Assembly (NCBI GenBank): GCA_002269645.1
Contig: NIVC01000438.1
Location: forward strand, 411,379-475,378
Direction: 5' to 3'
DNA: 64,000 nucleotides
Source of the DNA: Macrostomum lignano
Taxonomy: Eukaryota
Within the stretch, counting starts at the first letter, position 1. Each line of letters starts with the position of its first letter. Below the pieces are notes generated by a model. It was not told the DNA's origin and made no database searches. It saw only the letters and a list, made by a program, of their open reading frames with translations. Below, piece after piece: positions 2,776-58,492 of this stretch. The translations under genes were made by a program, and so were the position numbers.

Positions 2776-2918
2776 CTGAGCAGGCACACAAGCGCGCGGA
2801 TACGCACAGGCACACACTCACACAGGAGTGTACAGCGGCCCTAACTTTATTTAGTCGTTAGGCATGTACACTACACTGTGCCTTGGGGGTTGGCCCTCAA
2901 GGGCCTTGATTGCACAAG
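2776..2918 (-). mobile_element. Internal fragment of SINE family 1
   Basis: Matches the middle of the full-length copies at 28307-28686 and 62154-62531 (CTGAGCAGGCA..CAAGCGCGCGGATACG..GTTAGGCATGTACACT). Confidence 0.85.
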
Positions 2919-3001
2919 CATTGGGAATCCATTAGGCTACGGCGCTCGCAAATCAAACTCAGCCTCACCCTCTCCAGCTACACAGTTAAACAAAAAACAC
3001 T

Positions 3002-18023: not shown

Positions 18024-18064
<41 letters not shown>

Positions 18065-18082
18065 GCCTGTCTGTCTGCCGCC

Positions 18083-18115
<33 letters not shown>

Positions 18116-18118
18116 GCA

Positions 18119-18163
<45 letters not shown>

Positions 18164-21100: not shown

Positions 21101-21524
21101 AGCTTCGCTCATTCTCCGATTCTAACAGATATTTAATGCAACAACGGGCCATGAACAGGGCAGCTCCCAGCTGGCTGAGATGCCGGGATCTGCGCTGTCT
21201 ATCAGCCAGCGGCTGCAGCACAGCATCATCTAGCTCGTCAGTCAGTTTAATGATTCTCCGAAGTAGTGCATTGAGATTGCCGCTAGTTCGATTGTTGACA
21301 GCCAGGTGGGCCAGGTAAGGCAGCGCTAGAGATTCGTCAAAGTCGCGAGAGGCGCGAGAGGTCACGGGAGGACAGAGCTGATGACTTAACAAATTTGTCC
21401 AGAAAGCTTCAGTCTCGTCTAAGTCAGCCACAGCTGCCAGAGGCTCCGCTGAGCAGAATCTTTCAAGTAGAGGATTTCTGACTGGGCCTGTTAGCTCAGA
21501 CAGTGTGCTCACATTTGAGCCCAT
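16197..21524 (-). CDS. DYM: Dymeclin; exons 21524-21057, 20346-19909, 19053-18326, 17995-17644, 16616-16197
   Basis: MGSNVS myristoylation start; FWTNLL..NNRTSGNLNALL; SRQSLLLCLAL; ILEVVNGTL..NPHLVYTML; C-terminal RFKYVEEAKPDDFFVPYIWALVY matches the dymeclin FKYVEE..PEEFFIPYVWSLV motif. All four junctions are GT-AG and phase compatible. Confidence 0.95.
16760..17450. repeat. Degenerate ~15-bp repeat (GGGATTTCCCTAACT) with a 120-bp internal duplication, DYM intron 4
   Basis: Lines 17041-17160 and 17161-17280 are essentially identical. Confidence 0.85.
18017..18260. repeat. (CTGT)n microsatellite, DYM intron 3
   Basis: Direct sequence. Confidence 0.97.
19375..19835. repeat. 41-bp minisatellite containing AGCCAATCAG, DYM intron 2
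   Basis: About 11 units of GCAGCCAATCAGCGCACAGCTACAAAAGACACAGATATACA. Confidence 0.96.
20425..20988. repeat. 34-bp minisatellite with internal inverted repeat, DYM intron 1
   Basis: About 16 units of GTAGGATGTTTATAGCTGACAGGATTTCTTGTCA. Confidence 0.96.
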
Positions 21525-35994: not shown

Positions 35995-38900
35995 TCAATT
36001 GCGGCTGGCTATGGCGAACTTTTGTCGCACTGTTCTGAACTGCATCGACTGGAACCAGAGAAACTCGCGGAAATCTTTCGGCGCCATGCGATTGTTGCCG
36101 TGAGCAACCTGCCACCAGGGCAGGGCTGCGCTGCTCCTCTGAGGTGGTTTAAAAGATAAGGAGTTTGCTTTTTATCACGAAACCGCATCCAAGATCCCCC
36201 AGTTGCTGGGCCAGCCTCCCAGATCCCCCAGTTGCTGGGCTACCAGCCTCCCAGATACCCCAGTTACTGGGCCACCAGCCTCCCAGATCCCCCAGTTGCT
36301 GGGCCAGCCTCCCAGATCCCCCATTTGCTAGGCTACCAGCCTCCCAGATCCCCCAGTTGCTGGGCCAGCCTCTCAGATCCTCAGTTGCTATGCCAGCCTC
36401 CCAGATCCTCAGTTGCTGGGCCAGCCTCCTAGATCCTCAGTTGCTGGGCTAGCCTCCCAGATCCTCAGTTGCTGGGCCAGCCTCCCAGATCCCCCATTTG
36501 CTAGGCTACCAGCCTCCCAGATCCTCCAGTTGCTGGGCCAGCCTCCCAGATCCTCAGTTGCTGGGCCAGCCTCCTAGATCCTCAAAAATTGCTGGACCAA
36601 CAGCCTCCCAGATCCTCAGTTGCTGGGCCACCAGCCTCCCATAGTGTCAGTTGCTGGGCCAGCCTCCCAGATCCTCAGTTGCTGGATTAGTTTCTCAGAT
36701 CCTTAGTTGCTGGGCCAGCCTCTTACAGACCCTCAGTTGCTGGGCCAGCCTCCCAAACGACCTAGATCTCAAGTTACTGAGCCACCTATCCACCTTCGAG
36801 CTCCCGAGGAGCAAGCAGAAACGCAATCGCACAGTCTCCGGCAACTACTGGTGGCATGGAGGAACTCACCTCATCAGCTCCGCCCAGTTCGGCTTTCTCA
36901 GCCTCCGATAGCAGGCTTCCCTGAGAACCTTTGGCCACTACAGTGGTCATAACCGTGTCACTCGTGATGTTGTACGAATAGTCTTCACTGGAAGCTGTTG
37001 CAGTCGCAGTAACAGCTGAAGCACCTCCGTTGACATCGTTGTGCCCTTGTGCAGCTGCGGCGCCCCCAACCGAGTCGGCAGTTGGGGACCTCCTAGACGT
37101 GCAGCATCTCCACAGCCTGGCGGGGGACGTCGCAATCCAGGCGATGGCCAGCAGAATCGGCGGCGTCGAGCTAATTTCTCCGCCGAACTCGGCCAGCAGC
37201 TGGGCCCGGAAACTTCTCCAGATGACGCGAGCTCGTTCGTCTTCTTTGCCAACTGTCAGGCTGAGCTTTGCGATGAGCACATTGATGAGCACTATGCTAA
37301 TGATGAGCAGATAGACGAACAGAACTGCTCGGGTATAGATTTTGTTGCCAAGCGGATGAGGGCAGTTTCTTTCTGACTCCTGACCAGAATTGGGCGGATC
37401 GCGCTGGCACTGGCGCAGCCAGTCCATGCCAAACTCGCCGAAATGGGCGAGCAGAGGGCGCTGGAACACCTCGGTGATGTAGGAGCCGGTTGATAGCATC
37501 TCCGATCGAGTTGGGTTCTCGTAGTTGTTGCCTGTTTTGGTTCAAGAATTCGAAGAATGCTTCTTGAAAGACGCAGGTTTGTTTCTATATTTGACAAGTG
37601 TAATGGGTGTCTTCTTACATTTTACTGGTTGAATGCACCTGTTACATTTTACAGGTGAATTCCTACATTTTACAGGTGAATTTCTACATTTTAAGGTGTA
37701 TTCCTGCATTTTACAGGTGTATTCCTACATTTTACAGGTGTATTCCCACATTTTGCAGGCGTATTCCTACATTTTACAGGTGTATTCCTACATTTTACAG
37801 GTGTATTCCTACATTTTACAGGTGTATTCCTACATTTTAAAGGTGTATTCCTGCATTTTACAGGTGTATTCCTACATTTTACAGGTGTATTCCTGCATTT
37901 TACAGGTGTATTCTACATTTTAAAGGTGTATTCCTGCATTTTACAGGTGTATTCCTACATTTTACAGGTGTATTCCTACATTTTACAGGTGTATTCCTAC
38001 ATTTTACAGGTGTATTCCTATATTTTACAGGTGTATTCCTACATTTTAGAGGTGTATTCCTACATTTTACAGGTGTATTCCTTTATTTTACAGGTGTATT
38101 CCTACATTTTAGAGGTGTACTCTTAAATTTTACAGGTGTATTCCTGCATTTTACAGGTGTATTCCTACATTTTAGAGGTGTACTCTTAAATTTTACAGGT
38201 GTATTCCTGCATTTTACAGGTGTATTCCTACATTTTACAGGTGTATAATTCAGATAGATCATCGCTTACCTTGCACGTAGGTGTGCCCGCTGGGAAACAG
38301 CAGGCACACAATCAATATACCAAACGATGCGAGAAAAAACGCATTGACAATCAGAAACGGAATGACGTCCATCATAATTGTCGTCTTAGTGATGCTGATG
38401 TAGAGGCCGAGACGTTCGAAATAACCAAGACTGGACAGCATCCGCATACAGTAGAAGATGAATGACACAGCTAAAAATAGCCTGGAGGATGCAGATGCGG
38501 TGTTGCTATGCTTCAGGTGAATACGCGTCATGCGCTTAGGAAGGTTGCTAATCTCAAAGCAGGGTTGCTAATCTGACTGTGATGTTGCTAATTGGTGTTT
38601 CTAATCTCAAGTTGCGGTTGGCGGTTGGTAATCAACAAAGTAGTTTTTACCTGGCAAAGTAGTACGACAAGCCGTTGGTGGTTTCTTTATACGATACGGT
38701 TGTAGCGTCCAGTACAATGATCCAAATTAATCCAATCAGTAGAAATGCCATGGCTGCAATGTCCACTAGGTTCCATCTGTAGGACAGGTACCAGGACAGT
38801 CGCTTGCAAAAGCTCATCGATTTATAACCCGGCACGAATTTTACGGATCGAACGTCCTGCAACTCTTGGACAGAGTAGGACAGGCCGCAGAACAGGAGTA

Positions 38901-41900
38901 GCAGCTTCAAAAACATCATTGCGCCGTGAGATCTCGGTTCTCCCACCTGAGGAATTAGCAGGTTGGTTTTCGAAAGTTTAGTATGTAATTTTGACCCGTA
39001 TTCAAGTCTGTTCCGTCATTGTATCTGTTTGTTCATCATGTCTGTTCGGTCATCGTGTCTGTTTGTTCATCGTGTCTGCTCGGTCATCGTGTCTGCTCGG
39101 TCATCGTGTCTGCTCGGTCATCGTGTCTGCTCGGTCATCGTGTCTGCTCGGTCATCGTGTCTGCTCGGTCATCGTGTCTGCTCGGTCATCGTGTCTGCTC
39201 GGTCATCGTGTCTGCTCGGTCATCGTGTCTGCTCGGTCATCGTGCCTGCTCGGTCATCGTGTCTGCTCGGTCATCGTGTCTGCTCGGTCATCGTGTCTGC
39301 TCGGTCATCGTGTCTGCTCGGTCATCGTGCCTGCTCGGTCATCGTGTCTGCTCGGTCATCGTGTCTGCTCGGTCATCGTGTCTGCTCGGTCATCGTGTCT
39401 GCTCGGTCATCGTGTCTGCTCGGTCATCGTGTCTGCTCGGTCATCGTGTCTGCTCGGTCATCGTGTCTGCTCGGTCATCGTGTCTACTCGGTCATCGTGT
39501 CTGCTCGGTCATCGTGTCTGCTCGGTCATCGTGTCTGCTCGGTCATCGTGTCTGCTCGGTCATCGTGTCTGCTCGGTCATCGTGTCTGCTCGGTCATCGT
39601 GTCTGCTCGGTCATCGTGTCTGCTCGGTCATCGTGTCTGCTCGGTCATCGTGTCTGCTCGGTCATCGTGTCTGCTCGGTCATCGTGTCTGCTCGGTCATC
39701 GTGTCTGCTCGGTCATCGTGTCTGCTCGGTCATCGTGTCTGCTCGGTCATCGTGTCTGCTCGGTCATCGTGTCTGCTCGGTCATCGTGTCTGCTCGGTCA
39801 TCGTGTCTGCTCGGTCATCGTGTCTGCTCGGTCATCGTGTCTGCTCGGTCATCGTATCCCTCAGAACCTCTTCTTCTTCAGTCCACCTCCCTGACCATTT
39901 ATTTCACCAAGTTAAGCCGGTAATTTCCTCACCTCGTACACGTAGAAGCCAAGCAGGCAGAGAAAGGCGGCATTGAAGAGCGCGCAAACAAGCATGCTGA
40001 CCTGCGGAGTGCAGCCATTTGGCAGACGTCGCCGCAGCCGGTCGCCACGTTCCGGCCAGAGGCTCGAGATGATTCGAACCGGGCCGGAGCTGCAACTCGG
40101 GCCTTCCAAGCGCCGGTCGCCGTGGCTGTCGCGGCACAGATGACAGCAGAAGGTTCGCGGGCTGGCCAGCAGCAGGTCGACGTAGTCTGTGGCGCAGGGC
40201 AGAGCCAGCAGCTCCGGCTCGTGCGTTAGCAGCATGAGGTCGAAAAGGCACCGACCGTCGCTGCCGTCGCTATCGCCGCGAATCACGTCCGGACAGAACA
40301 GGGGTCCCCTGCCTGCGCTGTCACCGCCGTGAAACCGACCGCCGAGATAGTTGAACACCAGGCCTTTGTGCGCCTCCGTGATGGCGCCCCTGTAGAGCCG
40401 CTGGAGCGCCGTGCAGAACACCTGCTTTGCCTGACTGTAGAGAGCCTTGAAAGAGTTTTTTGAGATTAGGCGAGCAGTTATGAATGAAACGTAACCAAGG
40501 CTTGAAACCAAATGGGTTTTCTTACAATTTAAAAGTGGTCCCCTGCGCTCAAATGGTGCCTCACCTCTGCCAGTTCAAACGGGAGTTCAACATCAACAGC
40601 GCTGCCCCGTCGTCTGGAACTGCTGCCAAGTAGCGCAGCTGCCTGACTCTCGTCTGACTGCTGCAGCAGGTCCGCCTGTCGCAGCCGCAGAGTCAGCATG
40701 ATGCCCAGGCAGGCTGGCAGCAGGTCGAACTGGCGAGCCGGCAGCAGCTCGCCCGCCAGCTGCCACTTCTTCCGCCGAAGTGCCAGGCCGAGGAGGCCGT
40801 CCAGACTCCCTGGACAAGTGAGATTCTCGCCCGGCAGAGTGAGTTTGAGTAGTTGGTGCGGCTGCGACTCCAGGGCCTGCAAGAAATGCAAGTTTTGTGT
40901 CTTCTGCGTCCTGTGTTCTCTTCTCTGTGTCTCCTGTGCTCTCTCCTCTGTGTCCTCTGCGTCCTGTGCTCTCTCCTCTGTGTCCTCTGTGTCCTCTGCG
41001 TCCTGTGTTCTCTTCTCTGTGTCTCCTGTGCTCTCTCCTCTGTGTCCTCTGCGTCCTGTGTTCTCTTCTCTGTGTCTCCTGTGCTCTCTCCTCTGTGTCT
41101 CCTGTGCTCTCTCCTCTGTGTCTCCTGTGCTCTCTCCTCTGTGTCTCCTGTGCTCTCTCCTCTGTGTCCTCTGCGTCCCCTGTGTCCTCTTCTCTGTGTC
41201 TCCTGTGCTCTCTCCTCTGTGTCTCCTGTGCTCTCTCCTCTGTGTCTCCTGTGCTCTCTCCTCTGTGTCTCCTGTGCTCTCTCCTCTGTGTCCTCTGCGT
41301 CCTCTGTGTCCTCTGCGTCCCCTGTGTCCTCTTCTCTGTGTCTCCTGTGCTCTCTCCTCTGTGTCCTCTGCGTCCTCTGTGTCCTCTTCTCTGTGTCCCC
41401 TGTGTCCTCTTCTCTGTGTCCCCTGTGCTCTCTCCTCTGTGTCCTCTGTGTCCTCTTCTCTGTGTCTCTTGTGCTCTCTCCTCTGTGTCCTCTGTGTCCT
41501 CTGCGTCCTGTGTTCTCTTCTCTGTGTCTCCTGTGCTCTCTCCTCTGTCTCCTGTGCTTTCTCCTCTGTGTCCTCTGCGTCCTCTGTGTCCTCTGCGTCC
41601 TCTGCGTCCTCTGTGTCCTCTTCTCTGTGTCTCCTGTGTTCTCTTCTCTGTGTCTCCTGTGCTCTCTCCTCTGTGTCCTCTGCGTCCTCTGTGTCCTCTT
41701 CTCTGTGTCCCCTGTGCTCTCTCCTCTGTGTCCTCTGTGTCCTCTTCTCTGTGTCTCTTGTGCTCTCTCCTCTGTCTCCTGTGCTTTCTCCTCTGTGTCC
41801 TCTGCGTCCTCTGTGTCCTCTGCGTCCTCTGCGTCCTCTGTGTCCTCTTCTCTGTGTCTCCTGTGTTCTCTTCTCTGTGTCTCCTGTGCTCTCTCCTCTG

Positions 41901-44900
41901 TGTCCTCTGCGTCCTCTGTGTCCTCTTCTCTGTGTCCCCTGTGCTCTCTCCTCTGTGTCCTCTGTGTCCTCTTCTCTGTGTCTCTTGTGCTCTCTCCTCT
42001 GTGTCCTCTGTGTCCTCTGCGTCCTATGTTCTCTTCTCTGTGTCTCCTGTGCTCTCTCCTCTGTGTCCTCTGTGTCCTCTTCTCTGTGTCTCCTGTGCTC
42101 TCTCCTCTGTGTCCTCTGCGTCCTCTGTGTCCTCTTCTCTGTGTCCCCTGTGCTCTCTCCTCTGTGTCCTCTGTGTCCTCTTCTCTGTGTCTCTTGTGCT
42201 CTCTCCTCTGTGTCCTCTGTGTCCTCTGCGTCCTGTGTTCTCTTCTCTGTGTCTCCTGTGCTCTCTCCTCTGTGTCTCCTGTGCTTTCTCCTCTGTGTCC
42301 TCTGCGTCCTCTGTGTCCTCTGCGTCCTCTGTGTCCTCTGCGTCCTCTGTGTCCTCTGGGTCCTCTGTGCCCTCTCCTGTGTCCTCTCCTCTGCGTCCAA
42401 TGTGTCCTCTGTGTCCTTTTTTCTGCGCCCTCCGCGCCCTCCGCGCCCTCTGCGCCCTCTGCGCCCTCTGCGCCCTCTGCGCCCTCTGCGTCCTTCATGT
42501 CCCCTCTCCTTTCTCTTCTCTCTTCCCTTTCATTTCTCCTCGCTTTGTGCTCTTTCTCCGTCCCAATGCCCGTTCCAAACAAATTGAGAAGTCGCGATTG
42601 TCCAGAACTTGTCCTGCGGAATCTTTACTGTCTCAAGCTCATTACAGACTCGTCTGTTGATGCAAGCGTCAAGAAATAATTCCATAAGAAAACTAGTTAT
42701 GTCAGTTTGCAATTTTTCACATGCAAAAAAGGATCAACGCCCAATCTCGATGCCCCTACTCGTCAGTAGTATGCAATCGCTAGTTTAAATTTTAATCAAC
42801 AATTTAATCAGCAAACCTGAAGCGCCAGGCCCAATCCCGAGCTGTCGTCCGAGCCGCTGCCGCGAATCAGACCCCGCAGCGGCGCTGCCGACCCGTCCCG
42901 GAGGGCCGCTTGAACGCAGCCGAGGACCGGGTCTCTGCTGGCGTCGTCGCTAAAAGCAGACGACGCTGTGGTTGCCAGGGCGGCCATGGACCACTGGAGG
43001 CGAAAGTTGGCCGCTTCAGTTTTGTCTGGATAGCGTTGGGTAGGGGAGAACGTTGTACGACTGAGACACCTGTCTGTTACACCTGTCTGAGACACCTGTC
43101 TGTGACACCTGTCTGTGACACCTGTCTGTGACACCTGTCTGAGACACCTGTCTGAGACACCTGTCTGTGACACCTGTCTGAGACACCTGTCTGTGACACC
43201 TGTCTGTGACACCTGTCTGTGACACCTGTCTGTGACACCTGTCTGTGACACCTGTCTGAGACACCTGTCTGTGACACCTGTCTGTGACACCTGTCTGAGA
43301 CACCTGTCTGTGACACCTGTCTGTGACACCTGTCTGTGACACCTGTCTGTGACACCTGTCTGTGACACCTGTCTGTGACACCTGTCTGTGACACCTGTCT
43401 GTGACACCTGTCTGTGACACCTGTCTGTGACACCTGTCTGTGATACCGGTCTGTGACACCTGTCTCTGATACCTGTCAGGGCACATGTCTCATAAAACTG
43501 TTTAGGATGCCTGGCTGTTGTGGAGACACCTGTCTGGGATTAAAAGATTTTCTAAGAAACCGTGACCAAGTCAAATATTTCTGAAGCACGAGCTGATAGA
43601 TAAGCCGATACATTAGCTGAGCTACCACGCCAACTCGCATTATAGAAGGTAGATTACCATTCTCCTGATCCGCAGCCACAAGGCAGTCTTTTGCTCGATC
43701 CAAAATGGTTAAAGCTACGGCCTCAGCATCAGAGCAGCTCATATCAGCTGATTCGGTGCAAATATTCGACCCAGTCTTCATGCAATCGGCAAAATTGTTA
43801 AACTGTTTATAGGTGACAAGCTGACGCTCTCTGATAGCCAAGTCCAGCGCAGACGGAGGCGGCGGAGGCTGGATCATTTCCTGCATCAGGTAGGCAACGT
43901 TGGACCATTTCCCAGTCTGACAGGCTGCGTGCATCGGCGTGTAGCCGAACTGGCAGTTGCCGCACAGCAGTTCTTTCCAAGTTTCCACGCCTAGCCAGCC
44001 AGTGACCACCGGCTCGACGGCTTCAAGACTACCGAAAGCTGCTAGACTGTGCCCGATGCTGGAGCCGCTGGCCGAGCGAAACAGCAGCTGGCAGTCGAGT
44101 TTGGGCCTGCCGAGTGTCCCAGCTTGGTGGCTCTGAGCGCTGAATACATGCAGGTAGGGGAGACAGAAGTTCATCACTAAATGGCGACACGTATTGCATG
44201 GCGACGGTCACAAACTGCACGATGAGGGGGTGGCACAATATAAACTTGAAGGGACACAAACTGTAATTTGGATTGTGACACAAACTGTAATTTGGATGGT
44301 GACACAAACTGTAATTTTGATGGTGACACAACTGTAATTTGGATGGTGACACAACTGTAGTTTGGATGGTGACACCAACTGTAGTTTGGATGGTGACACA
44401 AACTGTAGTTTGGATGGTGACACAACTGTAATTTGGATGGTGACACAAACTGTAGTTTGAATGGTGATACAAACTGTAGTTTAGATGGTGACACAAACTG
44501 TAGTTTGGATGGTGACACAACTGTAATTTGGATGGTGACACAACTGTAGTTTGGATGGTGACACAAACTGTAGTTTGAATGGTGATACAAACTGTAGTTT
44601 GGATGGTGACACAACTGTAATTTGGATGGTGACACAACTGTAATTTGGATGGTGACACAACTGTGGTTTGGATGGTGACACAAACTGTAGTTTGGATGGT
44701 GACACAACTGTAATTTGGATGGTGACACAACTGTAGTTTGGATGGTGACACAAACTGTAGTTTGAATGGTGATACAAACTGTAGTTTGGATGGTGACACA
44801 ACTGTAATTTGGATGGTGACACAAACTGTAGTTTGGATGGTGACACAACTGTAATTTGGATGGTGACACAAACTGTAATTTGGATGGTGACACAAACTGT

Positions 44901-47900
44901 AGTTTGGATGGTGACACAAACTGTAGTTTGGATGGTGACACAACTGTAATTTGGATGGTGACACAAACTGTAATTTGGATGGTGACACAACTGTAATTTG
45001 GATGGTGACACAACTGTAGTTTGGATGGTGAAACAAACTGTAATTTTGATGGTGACACAAACTGTAGTTTGGATGGTAACACAAACTGTAGTATAGATGG
45101 TGACACAAACTGTAATTTGGATGGTAACACAAACTGTAGTTTAGATGGTGAAACAAACTATAATTTGGATGGTGACACAACTGTAGTTTGGATGGTGACA
45201 CAAACTGTAATTTGGATGGTGACACAAACTGTAATTTGGATGGTAACACAAACTGTAGTATAGATGGTGACACAAACTGTAATTTGGATGGTAACACAAA
45301 CTGTAGTTTAGATGGTGAAACAAACTATAATTTGGATGGTGACACCAACTGTAATTTGGATGGTGAAACAAACTGTAGTTTGGATGGTGAAACAAACTGT
45401 AATTTGGATGGTGACACCAACTGTAATTTGGATGGTGAAACAAACTGTAGTTTGGATGGTGAAACAAACTGTAATTTTGATTGTGACACCAACTGTAATT
45501 TGGATGGTGACACAAACTGTAATTTGGATGATGACACCAACTGTAATTTGGATGATGACACCAACTGTAGTTTAGATGGTGACACAAACTGTAATTTGGA
45601 TGGTAACACAAACTGTAGTTTAGATGGTGACACCAACTGTAATTTGGATGGTGACACAAACTGTAATTTGGATGGTAACACAAACTGTAGTTTAGATGGT
45701 GACACCAACTGTAATTTGGATGGTAACACAAACTGTAGTTTAGATGGTGAAACAAACTATAATTTGGATGGTGACACCAACTGTAATTTGGATGGTGAAA
45801 CAAACTGTAGTTTGGATGGTGACACAAACTGTAATTTGGATGATGACACCAACTGTAATTTGATGGTGACACCAACTGTAATTTGATGGTGACACCAACT
45901 GTAATTTGATGGTGACACCAACTGTAATTTGGATGATGACACCAACTGTAATTTGGATGGTGACACAAACTGTAATTTGGATGGTGACACCAACTGTAAT
46001 TTGGATGATGACACCAACTGTAATTTGAATGGTGACACAACTGTAATTTGGATGGTGACACCAACTGTAATTTGGATGATGACACCAACTGTAATTTAGA
46101 TGATGACACCAACTGTAGTTTGGATGGTGACACAAACTGTAATTTGGATGGTAACACAAACTGTAGTTTAGATGGTGACACCAACTGTAATTTGGAAGGT
46201 GACACAAACTGTAATTTGGATGGTAACACAAACTGTAGTATAGATGGTGAAACAAACTGTAATTTGGATGGTAACACAAACTGTAGTTTAGATGGTGAAA
46301 CAAACTATAATTTGGATGGTGACACCAACTGTAATTTGGATGGTGAAACAAACTGTAGTTTGGATGGTGAAACAAACTGTAATTTGGATGGTGACACAAC
46401 TGTAATTTTGATGGTGACACCAACTGTAATTTGGATGATGACACCAACTGTAATTTAGATGATGACACCAACTGTAGTTTGGATGGTGAAACAAACTGTA
46501 ATTTGGATGGTAACACAAACTGTAGTTTAGATGGTGACACCAACTGTAATTTGGAAGGTGACACAAACTGTAATTTGGATGGTAACACAAACTGTAGTAT
46601 AGATGGTGAAACAAACTGTAATTTGGATGGTAACACAAACTGTAGTTTAGATGGTGAAACAAACTATAATTTGGATGGTGACACCAACTGTAATTTGGAT
46701 GGTGAAACAAACTGTAGTTTGGATGGTGAAACAAACTGTAATTTGGATGGTGACACAACTGTAATTTTGATGGTGACACCAACTGTAATTTGGATGATGA
46801 CACCAACTGTAATTTGGATGATGACACAAACTGTAATTTGGATGGTGACACCAACTGTAATTTGGATGATGACACCAACTGTAATTTGGATGGTGACACC
46901 AACTGTAGTTTGGATGATGACACCAACTGTAATTTGGATGATGACACCAACTGTAATTTGGATGATGACACCAACTGTAGTTTGGATGGTGACACCAACT
47001 GTAATTTTGATGGTGACACAAACTGTAGTATAGATGGTGACACCAACTGTAATTTTGATGGTAACACAAACTGTAGTATAGATGGTGACACAAACTGTAA
47101 TTTGGATGGTAACACAAACTGTAGTTTAGTTGGTGAAACAAACTATAATTTGGATGGTGACACCAACTGTAATTTGGATGGTGAAACAAACTGTAGTATG
47201 GATGGTGAAACAAACTGTAATTTGGATGGTGACACCAACTATAATTTGGATTGTGACACCAACTGTAATTTTGATGGTGACACCAACTGTAATTTGGATG
47301 ATGACACCAACTGTAATTTGGATGGTGACACAAACTGTAATTTGGATGGTGACACCAACTGTAGTTTGAATGGTGATACAAACTGTAGTTTAGATGATGA
47401 CACAAAATGTAGTTTGGATGGTGACACAACTGTAATTTGGATGGTGACACAACTGTAATTTGGATGGTGACATAACTGTAGTTTGGATGGTGACACAAAC
47501 TGTAGTTTGGATGGTGACACAACTGTAATTTGGATGGTGACACAACGGTAGTTTGGATGGTGACACAAACTGTAGTTTCAATGGTGATACAAACTGTAGT
47601 TTTGATGGTGACACAACTGTAATTTGGATGGTGACAAACTGTAGTTTGGATGGTGACACAACTGTAATTTGGATGGTGACACAAACTGTAATTTGGATGG
47701 TGACACAAACTGTAGTTTGGATGGTGACACAAACTGTAATTTGGATGGTGACACAAACTGTAGTTTGGATGGTGACACAAACTGTAGTTTGGATGGTGAC
47801 ACAAACTGTAATTTGGATGGTGACACAAACTGTAGTTTGGATGGTGACACCAACTGTAATTTGGATGGTGACACCAACTGTAATTTTGATGGTGACACAA

Positions 47901-50900
47901 ACTGTAGTTTGGATGGTGACACAAACTGTAATTTGGATGGTGAAACAAACTGTAATTTGGATGATGACACCAACTGTAATTTGGATGGTGACACCAACTG
48001 TAATTTGGATGGTGACACCAACTGTAATTTGGATGGTGAAACAAACTGTAGTTTGGATGGTGAAACAAACTGTAATTTGGATGATGACACCAACTGTAAT
48101 TTGGATAGTGACACAAACTGTAATTTGGATGGTGACACAAACTGTAATTTGGGTGGTGACACCAACTGTAATTTGGATGGTGAAACAAACTGTAGTTTGG
48201 ATGGTGAAACAAACTGTAATTTGGATGGTGACACCAACTGTAATTTGGATGGTGACACCAACTGTAATTTGGATGGTGAAACAAACTGTAATTTGAATGG
48301 TGACACCAACTGTAATTTTGATGGTAACACAAACTGTAGTATAGATGGTGACACAAACTGTAATTTGGATGGTAACACAAACTGTAGTTTAGTTGGTGAA
48401 ACAAACTATAATTTGGATGGTGACACCAACTGTAATTTGGATGGTGAAACAAACTGTAGTATGGATGGTGAAACAAACTGTAATTTGGATGGTGACACCA
48501 ACTATAATTTGGATTGTGACACCAACTGTAATTTTGATGGTGACACCAACTGTAATTTGGATGATGACACCAACTGTAATTTGGATGGTGACACAAACTG
48601 TAATTTGGATGGTGACACCAACTGTAGTTTGAATGGTGATACAAACTGTAGTTTAGATGATGACACAAAATGTAGTTTGGATGGTGACACAACTGTAATT
48701 TGGATGGTGACACAACTGTAATTTGGATGGTGACATAACTGTAGTTTGGATGGTGACACAAACTGTAGTTTGGATGGTGACACAACTGTAATTTGGATGG
48801 TGACACAACGGTAGTTTGGATGGTGAAACAAACTGTAGTTTGGATGGTGACACAAACTGTAATTTGGATGATGACACCAACTGTAATTTGATGGTGACAC
48901 CAACTGTAATTTGATGGTGACACCAACTGTAATTTGATGGTGACACCAACTGTAATTTGGATGATGACACCAACTGTAATTTGGATGGTGACACAAACTG
49001 TAATTTGGATGGTGACACCAACTGTAATTTGGATGATGACACCAACTGTAATTTGAATGGTGACACAACTGTAATTTGGATGGTGACACCAACTGTAATT
49101 TGGATGATGACACCAACTGTAATTTAGATGATGACACCAACTGTAGTTTGGATGGTGACACAAACTGTAATTTGGATGGTAACACAAACTGTAGTTTAGA
49201 TGGTGACACCAACTGTAATTTGGAAGGTGACACAAACTGTAATTTGGATGGTAACACAAACTGTAGTATAGATGGTGAAACAAACTGTAATTTGGATGGT
49301 AACACAAACTGTAGTTTAGATGGTGAAACAAACTATAATTTGGATGGTGACACCAACTGTAATTTGGATGGTGAAACAAACTGTAGTTTGGATGGTGAAA
49401 CAAACTGTAATTTGGATGGTGACACAACTGTAATTTTGATGGTGACACCAACTGTAATTTGGATGATGACACCAACTGTAATTTAGATGATGACACCAAC
49501 TGTAGTTTGGATGGTGAAACAAACTGTAATTTGGATGGTAACACAAACTGTAGTTTAGATGGTGACACCAACTGTAATTTGGAAGGTGACACAAACTGTA
49601 ATTTGGATGGTAACACAAACTGTAGTATAGATGGTGAAACAAACTGTAATTTGGATGGTAACACAAACTGTAGTTTAGATGGTGAAACAAACTATAATTT
49701 GGATGGTGACACCAACTGTAATTTGGATGGTGAAACAAACTGTAGTTTGGATGGTGAAACAAACTGTAATTTGGATGGTGACACAACTGTAATTTTGATG
49801 GTGACACCAACTGTAATTTGGATGATGACACCAACTGTAATTTGGATGATGACACAAACTGTAATTTGGATGGTGACACCAACTGTAATTTGGATGATGA
49901 CACCAACTGTAATTTGGATGGTGACACCAACTGTAGTTTGGATGATGACACCAACTGTAATTTGGATGATGACACCAACTGTAATTTGGATGATGACACC
50001 AACTGTAGTTTGGATGGTGACACCAACTGTAATTTTGATGGTGACACAAACTGTAGTATAGATGGTGACACCAACTGTAATTTTGATGGTAACACAAACT
50101 GTAGTATAGATGGTGACACAAACTGTAATTTGGATGGTAACACAAACTGTAGTTTAGTTGGTGAAACAAACTATAATTTGGATGGTGACACCAACTGTAA
50201 TTTGGATGGTGAAACAAACTGTAGTATGGATGGTGAAACAAACTGTAATTTGGATGGTGACACCAACTATAATTTGGATTGTGACACCAACTGTAATTTT
50301 GATGGTGACACCAACTGTAATTTGGATGATGACACCAACTGTAATTTGGATGGTGACACAAACTGTAATTTGGATGGTGACACCAACTGTAGTTTGAATG
50401 GTGATACAAACTGTAGTTTAGATGATGACACAAAATGTAGTTTGGATGGTGACACAACTGTAATTTGGATGGTGACACAACTGTAATTTGGATGGTGACA
50501 TAACTGTAGTTTGGATGGTGACACAAACTGTAGTTTGGATGGTGACACAACTGTAATTTGGATGGTGACACAACGGTAGTTTGGATGGTGACACAAACTG
50601 TAGTTTCAATGGTGATACAAACTGTAGTTTTGATGGTGACACAACTGTAATTTGGATGGTGACAAACTGTAGTTTGGATGGTGACACAACTGTAATTTGG
50701 ATGGTGACACAAACTGTAATTTGGATGGTGACACAAACTGTAGTTTGGATGGTGACACAAACTGTAATTTGGATGGTGACACAAACTGTAGTTTGGATGG
50801 TGACACAAACTGTAGTTTGGATGGTGACACAAACTGTAATTTGGATGGTGACACAAACTGTAGTTTGGATGGTGACACCAACTGTAATTTGGATGGTGAC

Positions 50901-53900
50901 ACCAGCTGTAATTTGGATGGTGACACCAACTGTAGTTTGGATGGTGACACCAACTGTAATTTGGATGGTGACACCAACTGTAATTTTGATGGTGACACAA
51001 ACTGTAGTTTGGATGGTGACACAAACTGTAATTTGGATGGTGACACCAACTGTAATTTGGATGGTGAAACAAACTGTAGTTTGGATGGTGAAACAAACTG
51101 TAATTTGGATGGTGACACCAACTATAATTTGGATGGTGACACCAACTGTAATTTTGATGGTGAAACAAACTGTAGTTTGGATGATGACACCAACTGTAAT
51201 TTGGATGGTGACACCAACTGTAATTTGGATGGTGAAACAAACTGTAATTTGAATGGTGACACCAACTGTAATTTGGATGGTGAAACAAACTGTAGTTTGG
51301 ATGGTGAAACAAACTGTAATTTGGATGATGACACCAACTGTAATTTGGATAGTGACACAAACTGTAATTTGGATGGTGACACAAACTGTAATTTGGGTGG
51401 TGACACCAACTGTAATTTGGATGGTGAAACAAACTGTAGTTTGGATGGTGAAACAAACTGTAATTTGGATGGTGACACCAACTATAATTTGGATGGTGAC
51501 ACCAACTGTAATTTTGATGGTGAAACAAACTGTAGTTTGGATGATGACACCAACTGTAATTTGGATGGTGACACCAACTGTAATTTGGATGGTGAAACAA
51601 ACTGTAATTTGGATGATGACACCAACTGTAGTTTGGATGGTGACACAAACTGTAATTTGGATGATGACACCAACTGTAGTTTGGATGGTGACACAAACTG
51701 TAGTTTGGATGGTGACACAAACTGTAGTTTGGATGGTGACGCATTGGATTGTGACACAATTTAGACTATTTCCCCAAAATAGTCTAAAATCTTGCAAACA
51801 GGCTGGCCGGTGCAAGTTAAACAAAAGCAAGAGTACAATATTTCAATTCCGTCACCTGGCCATTGAAATTTCCAACGCCTCCAACAGAGCATCCAGCATA
51901 GCGGCATTGGAAACTAAAGCCGCCGCTCGCTCCCCTGCGTGGTTCTCTTTGGCAAGCCACTCCGTGAGCAGATCGACCGACAATCCATTCAGCAGGGCGT
52001 TGAGCACCGGCCGAACCACAGTCTGACCGTCGGCAGTTGACGGAATTGATGCGGCGAGCCGGTGCATAGCGGTGTTACCGGTGATGTCTGTCTGATGAAG
52101 CCGATCGCAGCCTCTGGACAGCAAGTAATTGATGACTTTTGGATCACCGCCGCGACCGCAACAACGCGTTAGCGCCGTGTCGCCCCATTTATTGTAGGCG
52201 TCGATCGCTTGAATGGTAACAACTTCGATCCTGTCGTCTTCTTGTCGGAGCAGTTTTTTTCTGTATTCGAGGAGCCAATCGGCCACGGTGAAACTGTGCG
52301 ACTCCACGGCCAAGAAAAATAGCGGGCAGTCTGGAAAAAGTAAGAAACCGAGTGCTATATTAACTTCGTAGGGCCAGAGAACATCAGCGGTAAAGCGTCT
52401 GACTCTCGCATTGAACTGTCCTGGATTTAGACGTTGTGCCCGAAAATTAATCAAGGGTTGCCTTATGATTTACTTAGGGGCACGCGAGCCGAACCCTCAA
52501 GACAAGTGTCCTGCGTTAGTGTGTTCCTGCGCACGTATCCGTTTGAGTGCTGTGAGGTCGGTGGAATCGGTCTGACTAACTCGCTTACTTTCTACCTTTC
52601 TCTCGGGTCAACTGTCCATTTCGTAATTTGCGACAGTGGTCAAAGCCCTATGTGAACTTCGAAGTTTTACATCAAAGAAAGCTAGACGTGTGCTACATGT
52701 ACTTGTACACACTCACTTACGTCATCAAAATCTCGATCTGACTGTGACCGAGGGACCGAGAAGTACCAAGTTACCTCGCTAACTCAGTGTAAACTTACCT
52801 TCTCCTCTGCCGTCAGCTTCTGCCAGTACAGCCTCCGCGACATCATTTGAATTACTCTGGTTTCGTTCTCCAACGAAATCGTCCAATACGCACAGATAGT
52901 TGTTAACAGCGGCCTTCCTCATTCGACTGCGCAGCCAGGCGCTGTAATGCGGTCCATCTCGTGCCAGTCGCTGCTCCGGCCACTCAGGATGCAGCCAGCA
53001 GACAACGCGCAGACGGCCAGTTCTGGCTGTCCAGCGAACGCCGAAGCACACTCGATGGCTATCCGATATTTCACTGTCGATGGCGTCGAAAATTTCTTCG
53101 TCGCCGGTACTGTTAACGCCGTTAACATCAGTGATCATCAAGGTCTCCCGGTTGTTGCGCTGTTCAACGGGACGTTTTTTGGAGCAGTGTTGAAATGAAA
53201 ACAATATGACGCTGCATGTGCTTGTACACACTCATGTCATCGAAATCTCTATGTGACTGTGCTCATGCCAGTGACCTTGGATACCTATGCCATTAACAGA
53301 TGGGGTGACTGTGCTCATGCCAGTGACCTTGGATACCTATGCCATTAACAGATGGGGTGACTGTGCTCATGCCAGTGACCTTGGATACCTATGCCATTAA
53401 CAGATGGGGTGACTGTGCTCATGCCAGTGACCTGGATACCTATGCCATTAACAGCTGGGTGACTGTGCTCATGCCAGTGACCCTGGAAACCTATGCCATT
53501 TATAAATTGGGTGACTATGTCCATGAGAACCATCTAAATTATCAAATATATATTTTGCCAGTAAAAAATACAAATGACATTTGTTAACTACCTTTCTTCT
53601 AAGCTCCGTCAGCATTTTACCCGCTCGAAACACGAATTGATGTCCGAATTCACCGCTAGTCACTTCGATTTTCGAGGGAAAATCGGCTCTAGGGGTTCGA
53701 GTCCAGGCCTCATTCCAGACTGGCTGATTCGGGGCCTCCGCAGATGATGGGTCTTGGGAGAAGTGGAATGCTAGCATGCCCTGCTCAGGATGAGCAGCCG
53801 CTTTGCCGTGAAAGTCTTTGTCGAAGCCCATCTCTGTTCTGAAAGACTCAACCGTGGTCAATATTTGATGAAGCAGGCTCTTCAACTCATTCGAGGACGA

Positions 53901-54086
53901 ACTGCCACTTTTTGGCAGGGGAGCATCGCAGACTTTGGTTTGCATGCCGAACGACTTTCGATTGTAAACTGTAACAGTGGACGCCGTCTGCGCCTCGTTG
54001 GACGCAAAATCGAGCGACATCAGCGGGTCGCCCAGCTTGCTGAACTGAATGCTGCATGACGTCAGCTGCATGGCAGGACAACTCAT
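35995..54086 (-). CDS. TRP cation channel: N-terminal ankyrin repeats plus TRPM-type pre-S1/S1-S6/TRP box. Approx. exons 54086-53592, ~53160-52799, 52330-51856, 44139-~43485, ~43030-42817, ~42690-~42570, 40876-40565, 40445-39933, 38946-38651, 38505-38270, 37531-36870, 36138-35995
   Basis: Ankyrin motifs (KWGDTALTRCC, ITGNTAMHRLA, QFGYTPMHAACQTG); S3 YLSYRWNLVDI; S4-S5 RLGLYISITKTTIMMDVIPFL..FLASFGILIVCLLFP; pore FGEF; S6 VLINVLIAKL; TRP box IWRSFRAQLLAEF. Most junctions are phase compatible; those at 43.5-42.6 kb and the true start are uncertain. Confidence 0.85.
36190..36760. repeat. ~27-31-bp minisatellite (CCCAGATCCTCAGTTGCTGGGCCAGCCT), last TRP intron
   Basis: Direct sequence. Confidence 0.92.
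37630..38245. repeat. 21-bp minisatellite (CATTTTACAGGTGTATTCCTA)n, TRP intron
   Basis: About 29 units. Confidence 0.96.
39045..39855. repeat. 17-bp near-perfect minisatellite (CTCGGTCATCGTGTCTG)n, TRP intron
   Basis: About 47 units; degenerate seed units at 39000-39060. Confidence 0.97.
40905..42495. repeat. Composite C/T/G minisatellite (CTCTGTGTC, CTCTGCGTC, CTGTGCTCTCTC modules), TRP intron
   Basis: Direct sequence; the 600-aa ORFs here are artefacts. Confidence 0.95.
43065..43480. repeat. 13-bp minisatellite (GACACCTGTCTGT)n, TRP intron
   Basis: About 31 units. Confidence 0.96.
44255..51755. repeat. 7.5-kb 24/23-bp satellite (TTGGATGGTGACACAAACTGTAAT)n with higher-order duplications, TRP intron
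   Basis: About 310 units; identical ORF translations recur at fixed offsets of 3028, 1263 and 359 bp. Confidence 0.98.
53255..53525. repeat. 52-bp tandem repeat, ~5 copies, TRP intron
   Basis: GACTGTGCTCATGCCAGTGACCTTGGATACCTATGCCATTAACAGATGGGGT units. Confidence 0.93.
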
Positions 54087-55168
54087 TTGCCAGTAAGTAT
54101 TGAGAATCCACTGCTGGCAAACTGATTGGATAGTTATATTTTTATCTTAGTTAAATAGGCCACAAAATGGGGAGGTTTCGATTTTCCAAGTTGTTCCAAA
54201 CTGGCCTAAAACTAATTAAGTAGGGGAACGACTGTCTATTGAGGCTTTTGAGTGCACGTTAAGGTTTGATGTACGCAAATTGTGATCTTGATTGGCGGGG
54301 TTACATCACTTAATTAGCCCTTTTTCACCTGTTCATGCACACGCATAAACAATTGAAGTTTTACTGCGTATTCCATGTTCAATAAACTTTGCTTTACGTA
54401 CACGCTGGGTTTGAAAATTTTACTTACCGAGATGCACGATAAAATTGATCAAATTGGTTTCGGTCATTTCAATACACCTGTCAGGACATTTTGCACACTT
54501 TTGTTGTACATGTCATATAGTTTGTCTGATTAAAGAAAATTAAAGAATAGTTCTCATAACTGTAAGCCTTTTATTATTTAAATGCGCGAATGATTTAATT
54601 ATGCAGCATAGGAAAGTAAATGTTCAAAAGTACACATCCACTTAGTGATAAGGTGTCAGAGAGACAGCAACAGTGATGCAATACAAACCACGTCACGGGC
54701 GCTCTAAAGTTTGCCGCCCAAACTAATCAAAATTCCACACCGCACGCCACTACAGCCGGGCTTTCAGTCTGCTTGTGGCACAAAGAGACTCTTGTTAGCT
54801 TCACAGATCTCTCAGCTTCATCTATCTCAAGTAAATATTAATTTTTGTGTTTTTGAGTCAAAGACCCCTTACATGAATATCGAGTGAATTCCCGTGAATC
54901 GGTCGTGAGCTATTTCTGAGTTGTGTTATTCTAAAGCAAAAATGCCCATAGTTCTCAGGATGAGTGTTGCGTCGACAAATCGGGAGCTAGAAGGCTGGTG
55001 GGGACTCGCTTCAACAAAGCAATTTGGTGGCAACTAGGAGCATCGCGAGTGCAACTCAAAAGAATCTCACACACAGGGAGAAAAAATGATTTTATGATGA
55101 AACTGAAAACTTTGTCGAGTTGAAAACTTGAAAGAAAATGATTTCAAGATGATGTTTCGGTGGCTTGG

Positions 55169-56707: not shown

Positions 56708-58492
56708 ATGCATCTGCTTCTGGTCGAATGGAGGAGGCCCGGCTGTTTTCAAAGTACGACATGCTTAAAAAGAATAACCATCGGATTTATAATTGCAATG
56801 CTGACTGTAATAAGTATAAAAACTGTAATTCTACGCAGTGGATCCAGTAAGTTCGTTGCTCAATTGAGCCAATATACACAAACTTCCGAAACTTTAACAC
56901 GTAAACCAGGGAGCAGCTTTTTATCCTTAGGAACACCTGCGCAATGGCTCTGGAATGTTGACATGGCTCGACACCAACTGCAAAGCAAAACAAAACCAGA
57001 GTTGGAAAATATGCTCAAGCAGATGCTGAAGCAGTCAACGGAGCTCTGTCACGACAATAACCAGACTGCAATGGTTAAAAACGGTAAAAATACCACTGGC
57101 TACAACGTGTGCACGGCGGGCCAATACAGTCCAACTCAGCCTTGCTACGTCTTCTCATTCAGCGAAAATGTGACGTCTCCAGTATTCGAAGAACACTTCT
57201 CCACAGTTCATGGCTGCTATGTATTGTCATTTTACCCGAAAATGACGCGATCTAGTCGACTGCACAGTGAACGCATTCTACTGCTCAGAGAGGGTCTAGG
57301 TAACTTCACTACTAACGACATTGTCGGTACCAACACTTATCTCGGCTACCTAAAGCGCTTCAAAGCCGATAAATCAGTGATCGACGTGTTGAAAATCGAC
57401 ATCCAGTCAGGAAATTTTTCACTGCTGAAAACTGCCGCGACTGACGGTTCGCTGGGACTAACAAAGCAGCTACTCTTGAATATTGAATTCGACGTAACAA
57501 AGTCTCCGACGTCTGACGAGCTTCAAAGAAATATTCGTGCTCTGATGGAACTGAAAAGTGTTGGATTTCGACAATGGAATGTAAGTGCACTTAAAGCAAA
57601 CACCTCAATAGGTGCCAGTATAGTGCACCTAAGCTACATTAACGTCAATTTCCTAAGCAGCCACTCTGCCAATATCAAACTGACGAACGACATTGGAAGC
57701 TTTATTGACTTTCCTCTGAAGAATGATCCAATTTTCAAAGGACAGCACTGTGATCAAATTCGTGTAGCACTCCGAGCTAACCTCGCTGCCATGTCTCAGA
57801 CCCAATTGGAATATCTGTACTATCAGCTAGTAGAGCAGCAGCATATCTTCTGCCCTAATAGCAAGCGAATCGGGTCCATAAAGGATGGCGGTTGGGATGT
57901 CTGCTTCAGCAAGCCCTTTGACATTCGTCGGTCAAAAGGCTGCATCGCCTTCTCGTTCGGGATCAATGACGTTTGGGAATACGATGACGAGTTAGCGGAC
58001 AGATTCGGCTGCCGAGTGTTCATGTTTGACCCCAGCATGCTAGGCGTGAAGGATCACAGGCGTAAGAACAGTTCCTGGTTCTACAGCATCGGTCTGTCGT
58101 CAAACAATGAAACCTCATCCGAAGGATGGAAGATGCGCTCTCTGTGCCAACTGTTTCAGGAACTTGTGCCGGGCAATTCGACTATCGACATTCTCAAGAT
58201 TGACATCGAATATGCAGAATGGGACTCGCTAGCGCAGGCTTTACAAGAGGGCTGCCTGGCTAGGGTGAAGCAGCTTCTGTTTGAGACGCACACGGACGGC
58301 TACTTTTACAGAGCATCTAACTACCGTCGGTTCGTAAGGATTCTTTTGGACATTTTCAACATCGGCTTTCGAACTTGGAAATGGGACATGAACCCCTGGT
58401 CAGGATTATATAAATCATACAGCGGCTTGAAAAGACCCTGCTGTTATGAGCTGTATATGCTGAATACTAATTTTATTAAAAATATCCAGTAA
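56708..58492 (+). CDS. Intronless type II membrane protein with two Methyltransf_22/FkbM-like (METTL24-like) domains
   Basis: N-terminal TM (ITIGFIIAMLTVISI). Domain 2: RIGSIKDGGWDVC, CIAFSFGI, GCRVFMFDPSM, IDILKIDIEYAEW, VKQLLFETH. Domain 1 is a degenerate copy (GYNVC, CYVFSFS, GCYVLSFYP, IDVLKIDIQ). Confidence 0.88.
   Translation: MHLLLVEWRRPGCFQSTTCLKRITIGFIIAMLTVISIKTVILRSGSSKFVAQLSQYTQTSETLTRKPGSSFLSLGTPAQWLWNVDMARHQLQSKTKPELENMLKQMLKQSTELCHDNNQTAMVKNGKNTTGYNVCTAGQYSPTQPCYVFSFSENVTSPVFEEHFSTVHGCYVLSFYPKMTRSSRLHSERILLLREGLGNFTTNDIVGTNTYLGYLKRFKADKSVIDVLKIDIQSGNFSLLKTAATDGSLGLTKQLLLNIEFDVTKSPTSDELQRNIRALMELKSVGFRQWNVSALKANTSIGASIVHLSYINVNFLSSHSANIKLTNDIGSFIDFPLKNDPIFKGQHCDQIRVALRANLAAMSQTQLEYLYYQLVEQQHIFCPNSKRIGSIKDGGWDVCFSKPFDIRRSKGCIAFSFGINDVWEYDDELADRFGCRVFMFDPSMLGVKDHRRKNSSWFYSIGLSSNNETSSEGWKMRSLCQLFQELVPGNSTIDILKIDIEYAEWDSLAQALQEGCLARVKQLLFETHTDGYFYRASNYRRFVRILLDIFNIGFRTWKWDMNPWSGLYKSYSGLKRPCCYELYMLNTNFIKNIQ

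Follow-up and report, generated by a model that had tools for sequence, protein, structure and literature searches.

A probable single gene for an ankyrin-bearing, SLOG-less TRPM-like cation channel in the flatworm Macrostomum lignano

The DNA stretch considered here (the window: 64,000 nucleotides of Macrostomum lignano, GenBank assembly GCA_002269645.1, contig NIVC01000438.1, positions 411,379 to 475,378) carries a series of exons on its minus strand between positions 35995 and 54086. These exons probably form one protein-coding gene for a SLOG-less, ankyrin-bearing 'TRPM-like' cation channel. The gene spans 35995-53159, possibly up to 54086, and is divided into 10-11 exons (E1-E11, Table 1) with canonical GT/AG splice sites. 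The encoded protein comprises about 1,200 amino acids (aa), or 1,214 aa in the model adopted below (model A). A short N-terminal segment is followed by about six ankyrin repeats (ANK), an MHR4-like linker, pre-S1, S1-S6, the TRP helix and a short disordered tail.

The membrane domain is of the TRPM type, judged by comparison of sequences. In a phmmer search against PDB, TRPMs hold the first 43 ranks (1.7e-12 to 2.3e-5), followed by NOMPC (2.3e-5) and TRPV3 (0.01). The segment that begins at S1 and extends beyond the TRP helix aligns with Nematostella TRPM2 at 1.7e-12, with TRPM4 and TRPM2 at about 1e-9, and with TRPM5, TRPM8 and TRPM3 at 1e-7 to 1e-5. A profile built from 18 family members returns TRPMs in all of its 60 best PDB matches (1e-56 to 1e-41), aligned over the whole profile length. 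A preliminary description of the region, made from the DNA letters, had described ankyrin repeats followed by a TRPM-type membrane domain, which agrees with the difference between TRPM (1.7e-12) and NOMPC (2e-5) and with the best profile value of 1e-56. The motifs quoted there are all present in minus-strand open frames: LFDL..ELLALPC in E7, WNLVDI in E8, LGLYI..MMD..PFL in E9, and FGEF, LINVLIAKL and IWRSFR..LLAEF..PP in E10.

In the AlphaFold2 model the membrane part has a predicted local distance difference test (pLDDT) score of 80-95. When the whole model is compared by Foldseek, NOMPC ranks first (5vkq, 2.3e-14), since its ankyrin repeats and its pore both align; TRPM4, 5, 3, 2, 8 and 7 come next, at about 1e-12 over 800+ columns. 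The alignments with TRPM4, 5 and 3, being far longer than a pore domain of ~350 residues, presumably reach into the linker. The Foldseek ranking, and the position of NOMPC as the best non-TRPM match by sequence, would suit a divergent TRPN-, TRPC- or TRPA-type channel with native ankyrin repeats, whose membrane domain is not derived from TRPM. Such an origin is most improbable. TRPM is favoured by 7 orders of magnitude with the single sequence, the 60 best profile matches are all TRPMs, the linker is homologous to MHR4, and the Pfam TRPM2-like domain is found in some relatives. TRPC and TRPA chains are absent from the 60 best PDB sequence matches, and TRPC, TRPA and TRPV from the Foldseek top 50. 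Identity with TRPC, TRPA or TRPV was rejected on these absences and on the value of only 0.01 for TRPV3.

The linker encoded by E6 and E7 has no direct Pfam or hidden Markov model (HMM) match, and its relationship was traced by hhalign through its relatives. Group 1, which includes the query, aligns with ANK-bearing group 2 at 95.6% probability (E=1e-8), and group 2 aligns with the MHR4/pre-S1 region of canonical TRPMs at 99.7% (E=3e-26). Compared directly with the same region, group 1 gives 86.5% (E=5e-6).

The ankyrin signal is weak when the exon open reading frames (ORFs) are searched separately (Pfam Ank_4 6e-6 and Ank 1.5e-5 in E3; Ank_2 0.006 in E4). After splicing, the model exceeds the curated Pfam cut-off for Ank_2 (36.5 bits vs 27.3, E=7e-9) in two stretches, E3 and E4, and Ank, Ank_3 and Ank_4 likewise pass their cut-offs. 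In PDB, the sequence closest to the N-terminal half is that of a DARPin (3.8e-4). AlphaFold2 forms about six helix-pair repeats at residues 116-360 with pLDDT 72-87 (about 80 for the pairs of E3; whole-model mean 68). The five to six repeats counted earlier are thus in keeping with the ~6 found here by Pfam on the spliced protein and by AlphaFold2 helix pairs, and the independently derived positions of E3 (52330-51856) and of the E4 start (44139) are identical to those reported for them.

Pfam matched no SLOG/MHR1-2 domain (LSDAT_euk), either in the ORFs of single exons or after splicing. A SLOG HMM made locally from the canonical hits recognizes 16 lower-ranked hits, and neither the query nor any ANK-bearing relative. 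Pfam searches revealed no NUDT9H/Nudix domain and no TRPM_tetra; no kinase and no detectable MHR3 are present. The absence of SLOG and NUDT9H noted in the preliminary description therefore holds, for SLOG in both the Pfam and the local HMM searches and for NUDT9H in Pfam. Beyond residue ~1094 the C-terminal tail has pLDDT <35 and no helix in the AlphaFold2 model, and it has no TRPM_tetra match in Pfam.

Relatives were collected by an exhaustive HMMER search against 1.84 billion representatives, which gave 145 hits; organism assignments cover 30 of these clusters. After fragments of the same gene, the hits from 1e-30 to about 1e-9 are long proteins in which ankyrin repeats stand at the N-terminus and Ion_trans at the C-terminus, and the nearest full-length relatives combine ANK with Ion_trans and never contain SLOG. 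Among the 30 clusters looked up, 21 ANK-bearing or related ones belong to M. lignano, one to Opisthorchis viverrini and one to a 5-kb contig of a bacterial metagenome-assembled genome (MAG). The members from M. lignano include Mlig011463, 018559, 030565, 028468, 022208, 003738, 020550, 021601, 033956, 012389, 016225, 022043, 023275, 004154 and others. SLOG-bearing TRPMs rank lower, from about 1e-12 (M. lignano) to 1e-4, and NOMPC stands at 2e-4; they include M. lignano Mlig001812, fish TRPM1, an abalone TRPM8-like protein and a Schistosoma rodhaini protein, all with LSDAT_euk, the TRPM2-like domain and Ion_trans and without ankyrin repeats.

M. lignano thus possesses at least 20 clusters, with mutual identity <50%, of ANK-bearing SLOG-less TRPM-like channels (found among relatives P0011-P0060), a number that greatly exceeds the few TRPMs reported from schistosomes. 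No description of this set or of its expansion was found in the literature searched, where work on M. lignano concerns TRPM_PZQ and TRPV. Membership of the gene in a flatworm clade with a common layout, as proposed earlier, is borne out by these clusters (at least 20) and by the Opisthorchis protein. The term 'chimeric', used in the preliminary description, is too strong. The protein is no one-off fusion and has many relatives in a coherent family, homology of its linker to MHR4 persists, and a 2026 study reports cryptic, divergent ankyrin repeats in MHR3 and MHR4 of canonical TRPMs (PMC13143021).

A neighbour-joining tree of the S1-TRP region (80 sequences, 251 columns, 100 bootstraps, rooted with NOMPC) places the query and Mlig011463 (P0011) together with 15 ANK-bearing sequences in a Macrostomum-dominated subclade with 83% bootstrap. 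A second ANK-bearing set includes an Opisthorchis-type group supported at 100%, and a group of M. lignano sequences supported at 91% retains a detectable MHR4. All ANK-bearing sequences form one clade of 38 members, with a bootstrap of only 14%.

On a broader scale, the ANK-bearing TRPM-like channels could form an old TRP lineage of their own, placed either as sister to TRPM+TRPS or at their base, which would have kept an ancestral ankyrin domain while SLOG was acquired by TRPM and TRPS. The 20+ paralogue clusters of Macrostomum would then be a lineage-specific sensory (chemo- or thermosensory) expansion, with parasites keeping only TRPM_MCLZ. This scenario is speculative and on balance unlikely. 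If true, it would revise the view of an ankyrin-free TRPM-TRPS ancestor and provide a tractable free-living model for the family of the meclonazepam target.

The hit from the bacterial MAG (P0013) is an uninterrupted ORF of 1,537 aa that gives six ankyrin hits and contains a TRPM-like pore; it lies on JAZBNS010000602.1 (positions 1-5106). This contig belongs to GCA_036350755.1, 'Kangiellaceae bacterium', binned as a gammaproteobacterium. In the tree P0013 clusters inside the Macrostomum-dominated group. Its bacterial origin was rejected, and the contig is most likely mis-binned eukaryotic (animal) DNA.

The residues on which TRPM function depends are largely kept. The Ca2+-site positions E805, D808, N836 and D839 align to E893, Q896, N918 and D921 of Nematostella TRPM2 (NvTRPM2), and the Glu of the TRP helix is E1061. 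The Ca2+-site positions of the S1-S4 cavity, as in NvTRPM2, TRPM4, TRPM5 and TRPM8, are conserved across the 18-sequence family alignment. The S4 Arg (Arg889), the filter Gly (FGEF), the S6 Asn-x-x-Ile-Ala and the Trp, Arg and Glu of the TRP helix are also retained. The gate and the TRP box had been called non-canonical, and they are less unusual than that: Asn, Ile and Ala of S6 and Trp, Arg and Glu of the TRP helix occur throughout the family and the TRPMs.

The protein most likely assembles into a tetramer that conducts cations non-selectively. Ca2+ permeation is likely, because the filter Glu is as in the alpha-type TRPM and NvTRPM2 channels. Gating or tuning probably proceeds from the S1-S4 cavity, via intracellular Ca2+ at E805, D808, N836, D839 and E1061, via a small ligand, or via both. 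The ankyrin domain would take the part of SLOG, as a cytosolic platform for regulation or assembly.

The exons lie in serial long open frames of 150-243 codons each along the minus strand (~35995-54100). With codon usage trained on E6-E11, the proposed frame scores highest in each of E1, E2, E3, E4 and E5. Chance ORFs were rejected on the strength of the serial one-strand frames, the frame-specific codon usage and the Pfam ankyrin scores of the spliced protein. The channel part, E6-E11 (712 aa together), is fixed by the database models P0001-P0004 and the window sequence; the best match, UniRef A0A1I8GH42 (P0001), is 97-99% identical to it exon by exon. A rough concatenate of the four downstream frames matched Macrostomum lignano proteins only, in line with the flatworm origin proposed earlier.

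From E2 to E11 all junctions are GT/AG and in phase (a slash marks the splice site below). The candidate first exon E1 has its donor at 53592 (AAG/GTAGTT, phase 0), compatible with the phase-0 acceptor of E2 at 53159. The E2 donor at 52799 (AAG/GTAAGT, phase 1) joins E3 at TTTTCCAG/AC, where the junction codon G+AC encodes Asp. The E3 donor is CAG/GTGACG (phase 2), and the E4 acceptor TGTATTCAG/C at 44139 completes the codon AGC. UniRef A0A1I8JMQ1 (P0005) starts exactly at E3 and continues into E4 and E5. The E5 donor, CAG/GTTTGC (phase 0), fits the phase-0 start of E6. The intron of 7.7 kb pointed out earlier corresponds to intron 3; its tandem array at 44253-51740 consists of 314 copies of a 24-bp unit (Tandem Repeats Finder).

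For the E4-E5 junction, model A (donor 43658, acceptor 43025) is adopted, since UniRef A0A1I8GH05 (P0008, a model of another copy) uses donor 43658 and the entry into E5 lies at or near 43025 in every database model. In P0008, '...VAADQEN' is joined to 'DKTEAANFRLQ', which corresponds to this donor and acceptor. E4 has alternative donors at 43530, 43528 and 43499. Model B (donor 43530, acceptor 42993) was judged less well supported than model A, though B and two further donors could still apply.

The evidence that ankyrin and channel exons share one transcript is only indirect and consists of phase-compatible splice sites, overlapping database models and the layout of the closest relatives. 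The models form a chain: P0005 covers E3-E4-E5, P0007, P0008, P0009 and P0012 cover E4-E5, and P0002 covers E5-E11. E5 bridges both sets, being present in P0005, P0007, P0008, P0009, P0012 and P0019 on the upstream side and in P0002 on the channel side. AlphaFold2 helices cross the E3/E4 junction (helix 256-276) and the E5/E6 junction.

Several observations weigh against the reading of these exons as one gene for a working TRPM-like channel. The gene model was built from genomic DNA and database models alone, and at this locus the span from the ankyrin repeats to the pore is covered by no single database model, only by fragments, partly frame-hopping, from an error-prone assembly. A word-indexed protein search with the 534-aa N-terminus gave no match. 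E1 and E2 have no homologue among all sequences collected, the AlphaFold2 pLDDT of E2 is low (35-55), and the sequence by itself allows three phase-compatible pairs for the E4-E5 junction. Pfam Ion_trans and the TRPM2-like domain (PF25508) are not detected directly in the query, and a Pfam search of the 712-aa C-terminal part stayed empty up to E=10. In the S4-S5 linker, Gly-Leu replaces the Gly-Pro that is almost invariant in the family. The deep branching between ANK-bearing and SLOG-bearing sequences has bootstrap values of 0-26%, and the functional statements (tetramer, permeation, gating by Ca2+ or a ligand) are drawn from homologues alone. In the word-indexed search the family profile A1 retrieved only two fragments of the same gene, and exact-product look-ups of P0001, P0002 and the E10 ORF retrieved no contigs.

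Part of these data would agree with two genes on the same strand, an upstream ankyrin-repeat gene (E2-E5) and, adjoining it, a TRPM-like channel gene with a short N-terminus (E6-E11). P0001, the best of the database models, begins at E6, the ankyrin exons occur only in separate short models, the joining is proposed from DNA and database models, the N-terminal query is unmatched in the word-indexed search, and long repeat-filled introns lie between the two blocks. Two genes are nevertheless very unlikely. P0001 is a truncated model, because it lacks an initial Met and its start coincides exactly with the E6 acceptor; E5 is common to the upstream models P0005 and P0008 and to the channel model P0002; all junctions are in phase; and the AlphaFold2 helices span E3/E4 and E5/E6. 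Essentially all close full-length relatives, including transcript-based NCBI models, have ANK and channel in one protein.

It could also be proposed that the locus is a decaying or silent paralogue (a young pseudogene), intact by chance, of an expanded family in a partly polyploid genome. The undetected Ion_trans domain, the Gly-Leu of the S4-S5 linker, the introns swollen with tandem arrays, the low-confidence exons E1, E2 and E5 and the failure of the searches to find a full-length annotated product would be consistent with decay. The chance of this is small: about 3.6 kb of coding sequence over 10 exons contains no stop and no frameshift, with all splice sites intact, the codon bias is specific to the frame, the functionally key residues are conserved, and the transmembrane domain is modelled at pLDDT 80-95. 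A single intact channel gene is thus the preferred reading, and its parts are listed in Table 1 with the other features of the window.

Table 1. Exons of the channel gene, intron repeats and neighbouring genes (window positions)
Feature	Position	Strand	Basis or remark
E1, candidate first coding exon (uncertain)	53592-54086	-	ATG at 54086; frame open for 225 codons
E2, N-terminal segment preceding the ankyrin repeats (probable)	52799-53159	-	In-frame ATG at 53138; codon usage
E3, ankyrin repeats 1-4	51856-52330	-	Pfam Ank/Ank_4/Ank_2; DARPin in PDB; UniRef model; AlphaFold2 helix pairs
Intron 3	44140-51855 (7,716 bp)	-	~97% a 24-bp tandem array (Tandem Repeats Finder)
E4, ankyrin repeats 5-6 and start of linker	43658-44139	-	Pfam Ank_3/Ank_5/Ank_2, residues 333-357; 3' limit according to model A
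E5, linker, low complexity, low confidence	42817-43025	-	Present in upstream models and in channel model P0002
E6, first half of MHR4-like helical linker (…RQFDLLPACL…)	40565-40876	-	P0001 by tblastn, 97% identity; canonical splice sites
E7, second half of MHR4-like linker, pre-S1 (CLFDLMLLTHEPELLALPCATDYVDLLL), S1	39933-40445	-	tblastn; splice sites; hhalign
E8, S2 (SVQELQD), S3 (RWNLVD), start of S4	38651-38946	-	tblastn; splice sites; TRPM structure alignment
E9, S4 (conserved Arg889), S4-S5 linker, S5	38270-38481	-	tblastn; splice sites; family alignment
E10, pore helix, FGEF filter, S6 (LINVLIAKL), TRP helix (IWRSFRAQLLAEF…TPP), C-terminal tail	36870-37531	-	tblastn; splice sites; TRPM alignments and profile
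E11, last 47 codons and TGA stop (35995-35997)	35995-36138	-	tblastn with P0001 and P0006; canonical acceptor CACCTCAG/
Intron arrays	36188-36755, 37643-38246, 39006-39855, 40909-42417, 43061-43477, 44253-51740, 53253-53516		Tandem repeats
Dymeclin exons	16200-21524	-	Neighbour
Lin-7-like L27+PDZ protein	27462-28004	+	Neighbour
HMG-box protein, poly-Q-rich	30627-32390	+	Neighbour
FkbM-type methyltransferase (Methyltransf_22), single exon	56708-58489	+	Neighbour

The window has the composition of ordinary eukaryotic DNA, with a guanine-cytosine content of 30-58% and many minisatellites. Seven of the ten introns contain a distinct tandem array of their own (units of 28, 21, 17, 23/46, 13, 24 and 52 bp), and several of these arrays give rise to long ORFs, on either strand, that are spurious. 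The genes nearby are ordinary and have no link to the channel. The public M. lignano models of 35995-44139 and its copies (WormBase ParaSite/UniRef: P0002-P0012 and P0019) are short and frame-hopping, and some carry misleading names ('Integron gene cassette protein', 'CPG4 domain-containing protein'); such models look like artefacts of an indel-rich assembly rather than biology.

The class of channels is of interest since it includes TRPM_MCLZ, a validated anthelmintic target, and breaks the textbook rule of ankyrin-free TRPMs. The locus adds an intact member from a free-living flatworm, and a single gene of this kind would not surprise a specialist. What is chiefly new is that channels of this type have undergone a large and apparently undescribed expansion in M. 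lignano, a free-living flatworm that serves as a laboratory model and is amenable to transgenesis and RNA interference. The expansion offers material for dating the exchange of SLOG and ankyrin N-termini in TRPM evolution, as well as a non-parasitic system for studying gating through the VSLD (voltage-sensor-like domain) pocket and what the ankyrin domain does. Caution is required with the current M. lignano protein sets, which split such genes into fragments.

Compared with canonical TRPMs (Nematostella TRPM2, TRPM4, TRPM3, M. lignano Mlig001812), which provide the best sequence and profile matches from S1 to the TRP helix, the query has a similar MHR4/pre-S1-like linker, the Ca2+-site residues, the Asn, Ile and Ala of S6 and the TRP-helix pattern W…R…E…PP. 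It differs in having canonical ankyrin repeats and in lacking SLOG/MHR1-2, a detectable MHR3, the TRPM_tetra coiled coil, NUDT9H and a kinase. TRPN/NOMPC shares the order of an ankyrin domain followed by a six-helix pore and is the best whole-model Foldseek match, but it has 29 repeats versus ~6 in the query, and its pore sequence match is far weaker than that of TRPM (2.3e-5 vs 1.7e-12). Both TRPM and TRPS were described by Himmel et al. in 2020 as devoid of ankyrin repeats (PMC7306681). TRPS (soromelastatin) combines SLOG and Nudix without ankyrin, whereas in the query ankyrin repeats are present and SLOG and Nudix were not detected.

The closest distinct gene is P0011 (Mlig011463, PAA72794.1), with 33% identity over S1-TRP (E=3e-30). 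It has LINLLIAKFSLTV and a …LLLEF…LPPP TRP region in common with the query and is its sister in both trees. P0011 is only 763 aa long, and its N-terminus shows neither a detectable Pfam ankyrin repeat nor similarity to the N-terminus of the query.

The known channel of the same layout is TRPM_MCLZ of Schistosoma mansoni (Smp_333650), the target of meclonazepam, which lacks MHR1/2-SLOG and carries N-terminal ankyrin-like repeats (PMC10788528, PMC11731825, PMC12861061). After cloning and expression it has been studied by patch clamp and mutagenesis, and it is a functional non-selective channel with a linear current-voltage relationship, gated via the S1-S4 (VSLD) pocket; its parasitic-flatworm group has been named 'TRPM-like' (same sources). 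The earlier remark that ankyrin-TRPM proteins of schistosomes are uncharacterised is therefore out of date.

Among the best hits from outside Macrostomum (1e-23) is P0015 of O. viverrini (T265_12782, "ankyrin repeat protein"). It shows the pocket pattern at the published spacing: H-x3-H in S1, 33 residues, Y-x3-E in S2, 75 residues, and R-x2-H in S4. Judged only by this pattern and spacing against the published numbering, P0015 is taken to be the Opisthorchis TRPM_MCLZ. It contains two complete pore domains in series (residues 749-983 and 1376-1641), which fits the alternative exons 3a/3b reported for TRPM_MCLZ of some parasites, probably concatenated by the annotator.

Several differences separate the query from TRPM_MCLZ. 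Pocket residues H827, H831 and H946 (H/Y946) of the latter correspond to C760, N764 and S892, so that three of the six pocket positions are kept. The MCLZ-type sequences form their own group at 100%, while the query stands in the 83% subclade, the node joining them having 14%. The MHR4-like region of the query has diverged much further and gives no direct match in Pfam or HMM searches, and the gene has 10-11 exons vs the 3 reported for Sm.TRPM_MCLZ. As three pocket histidine positions are replaced and the query falls into another subclade, it is a paralogue of TRPM_MCLZ rather than its orthologue. The likeness extends to an ankyrin-like N-terminus in place of SLOG/MHR1-2, TRPM-type S1-S6, the TRP helix, and the pocket residues Y864, E868 and R943, represented by Y801, E805 and R889. 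With its ankyrin-like N-terminus, absence of SLOG and TRPM-type pore, the query corresponds to the description of the ankyrin-bearing 'TRPM-like' group of flatworms.

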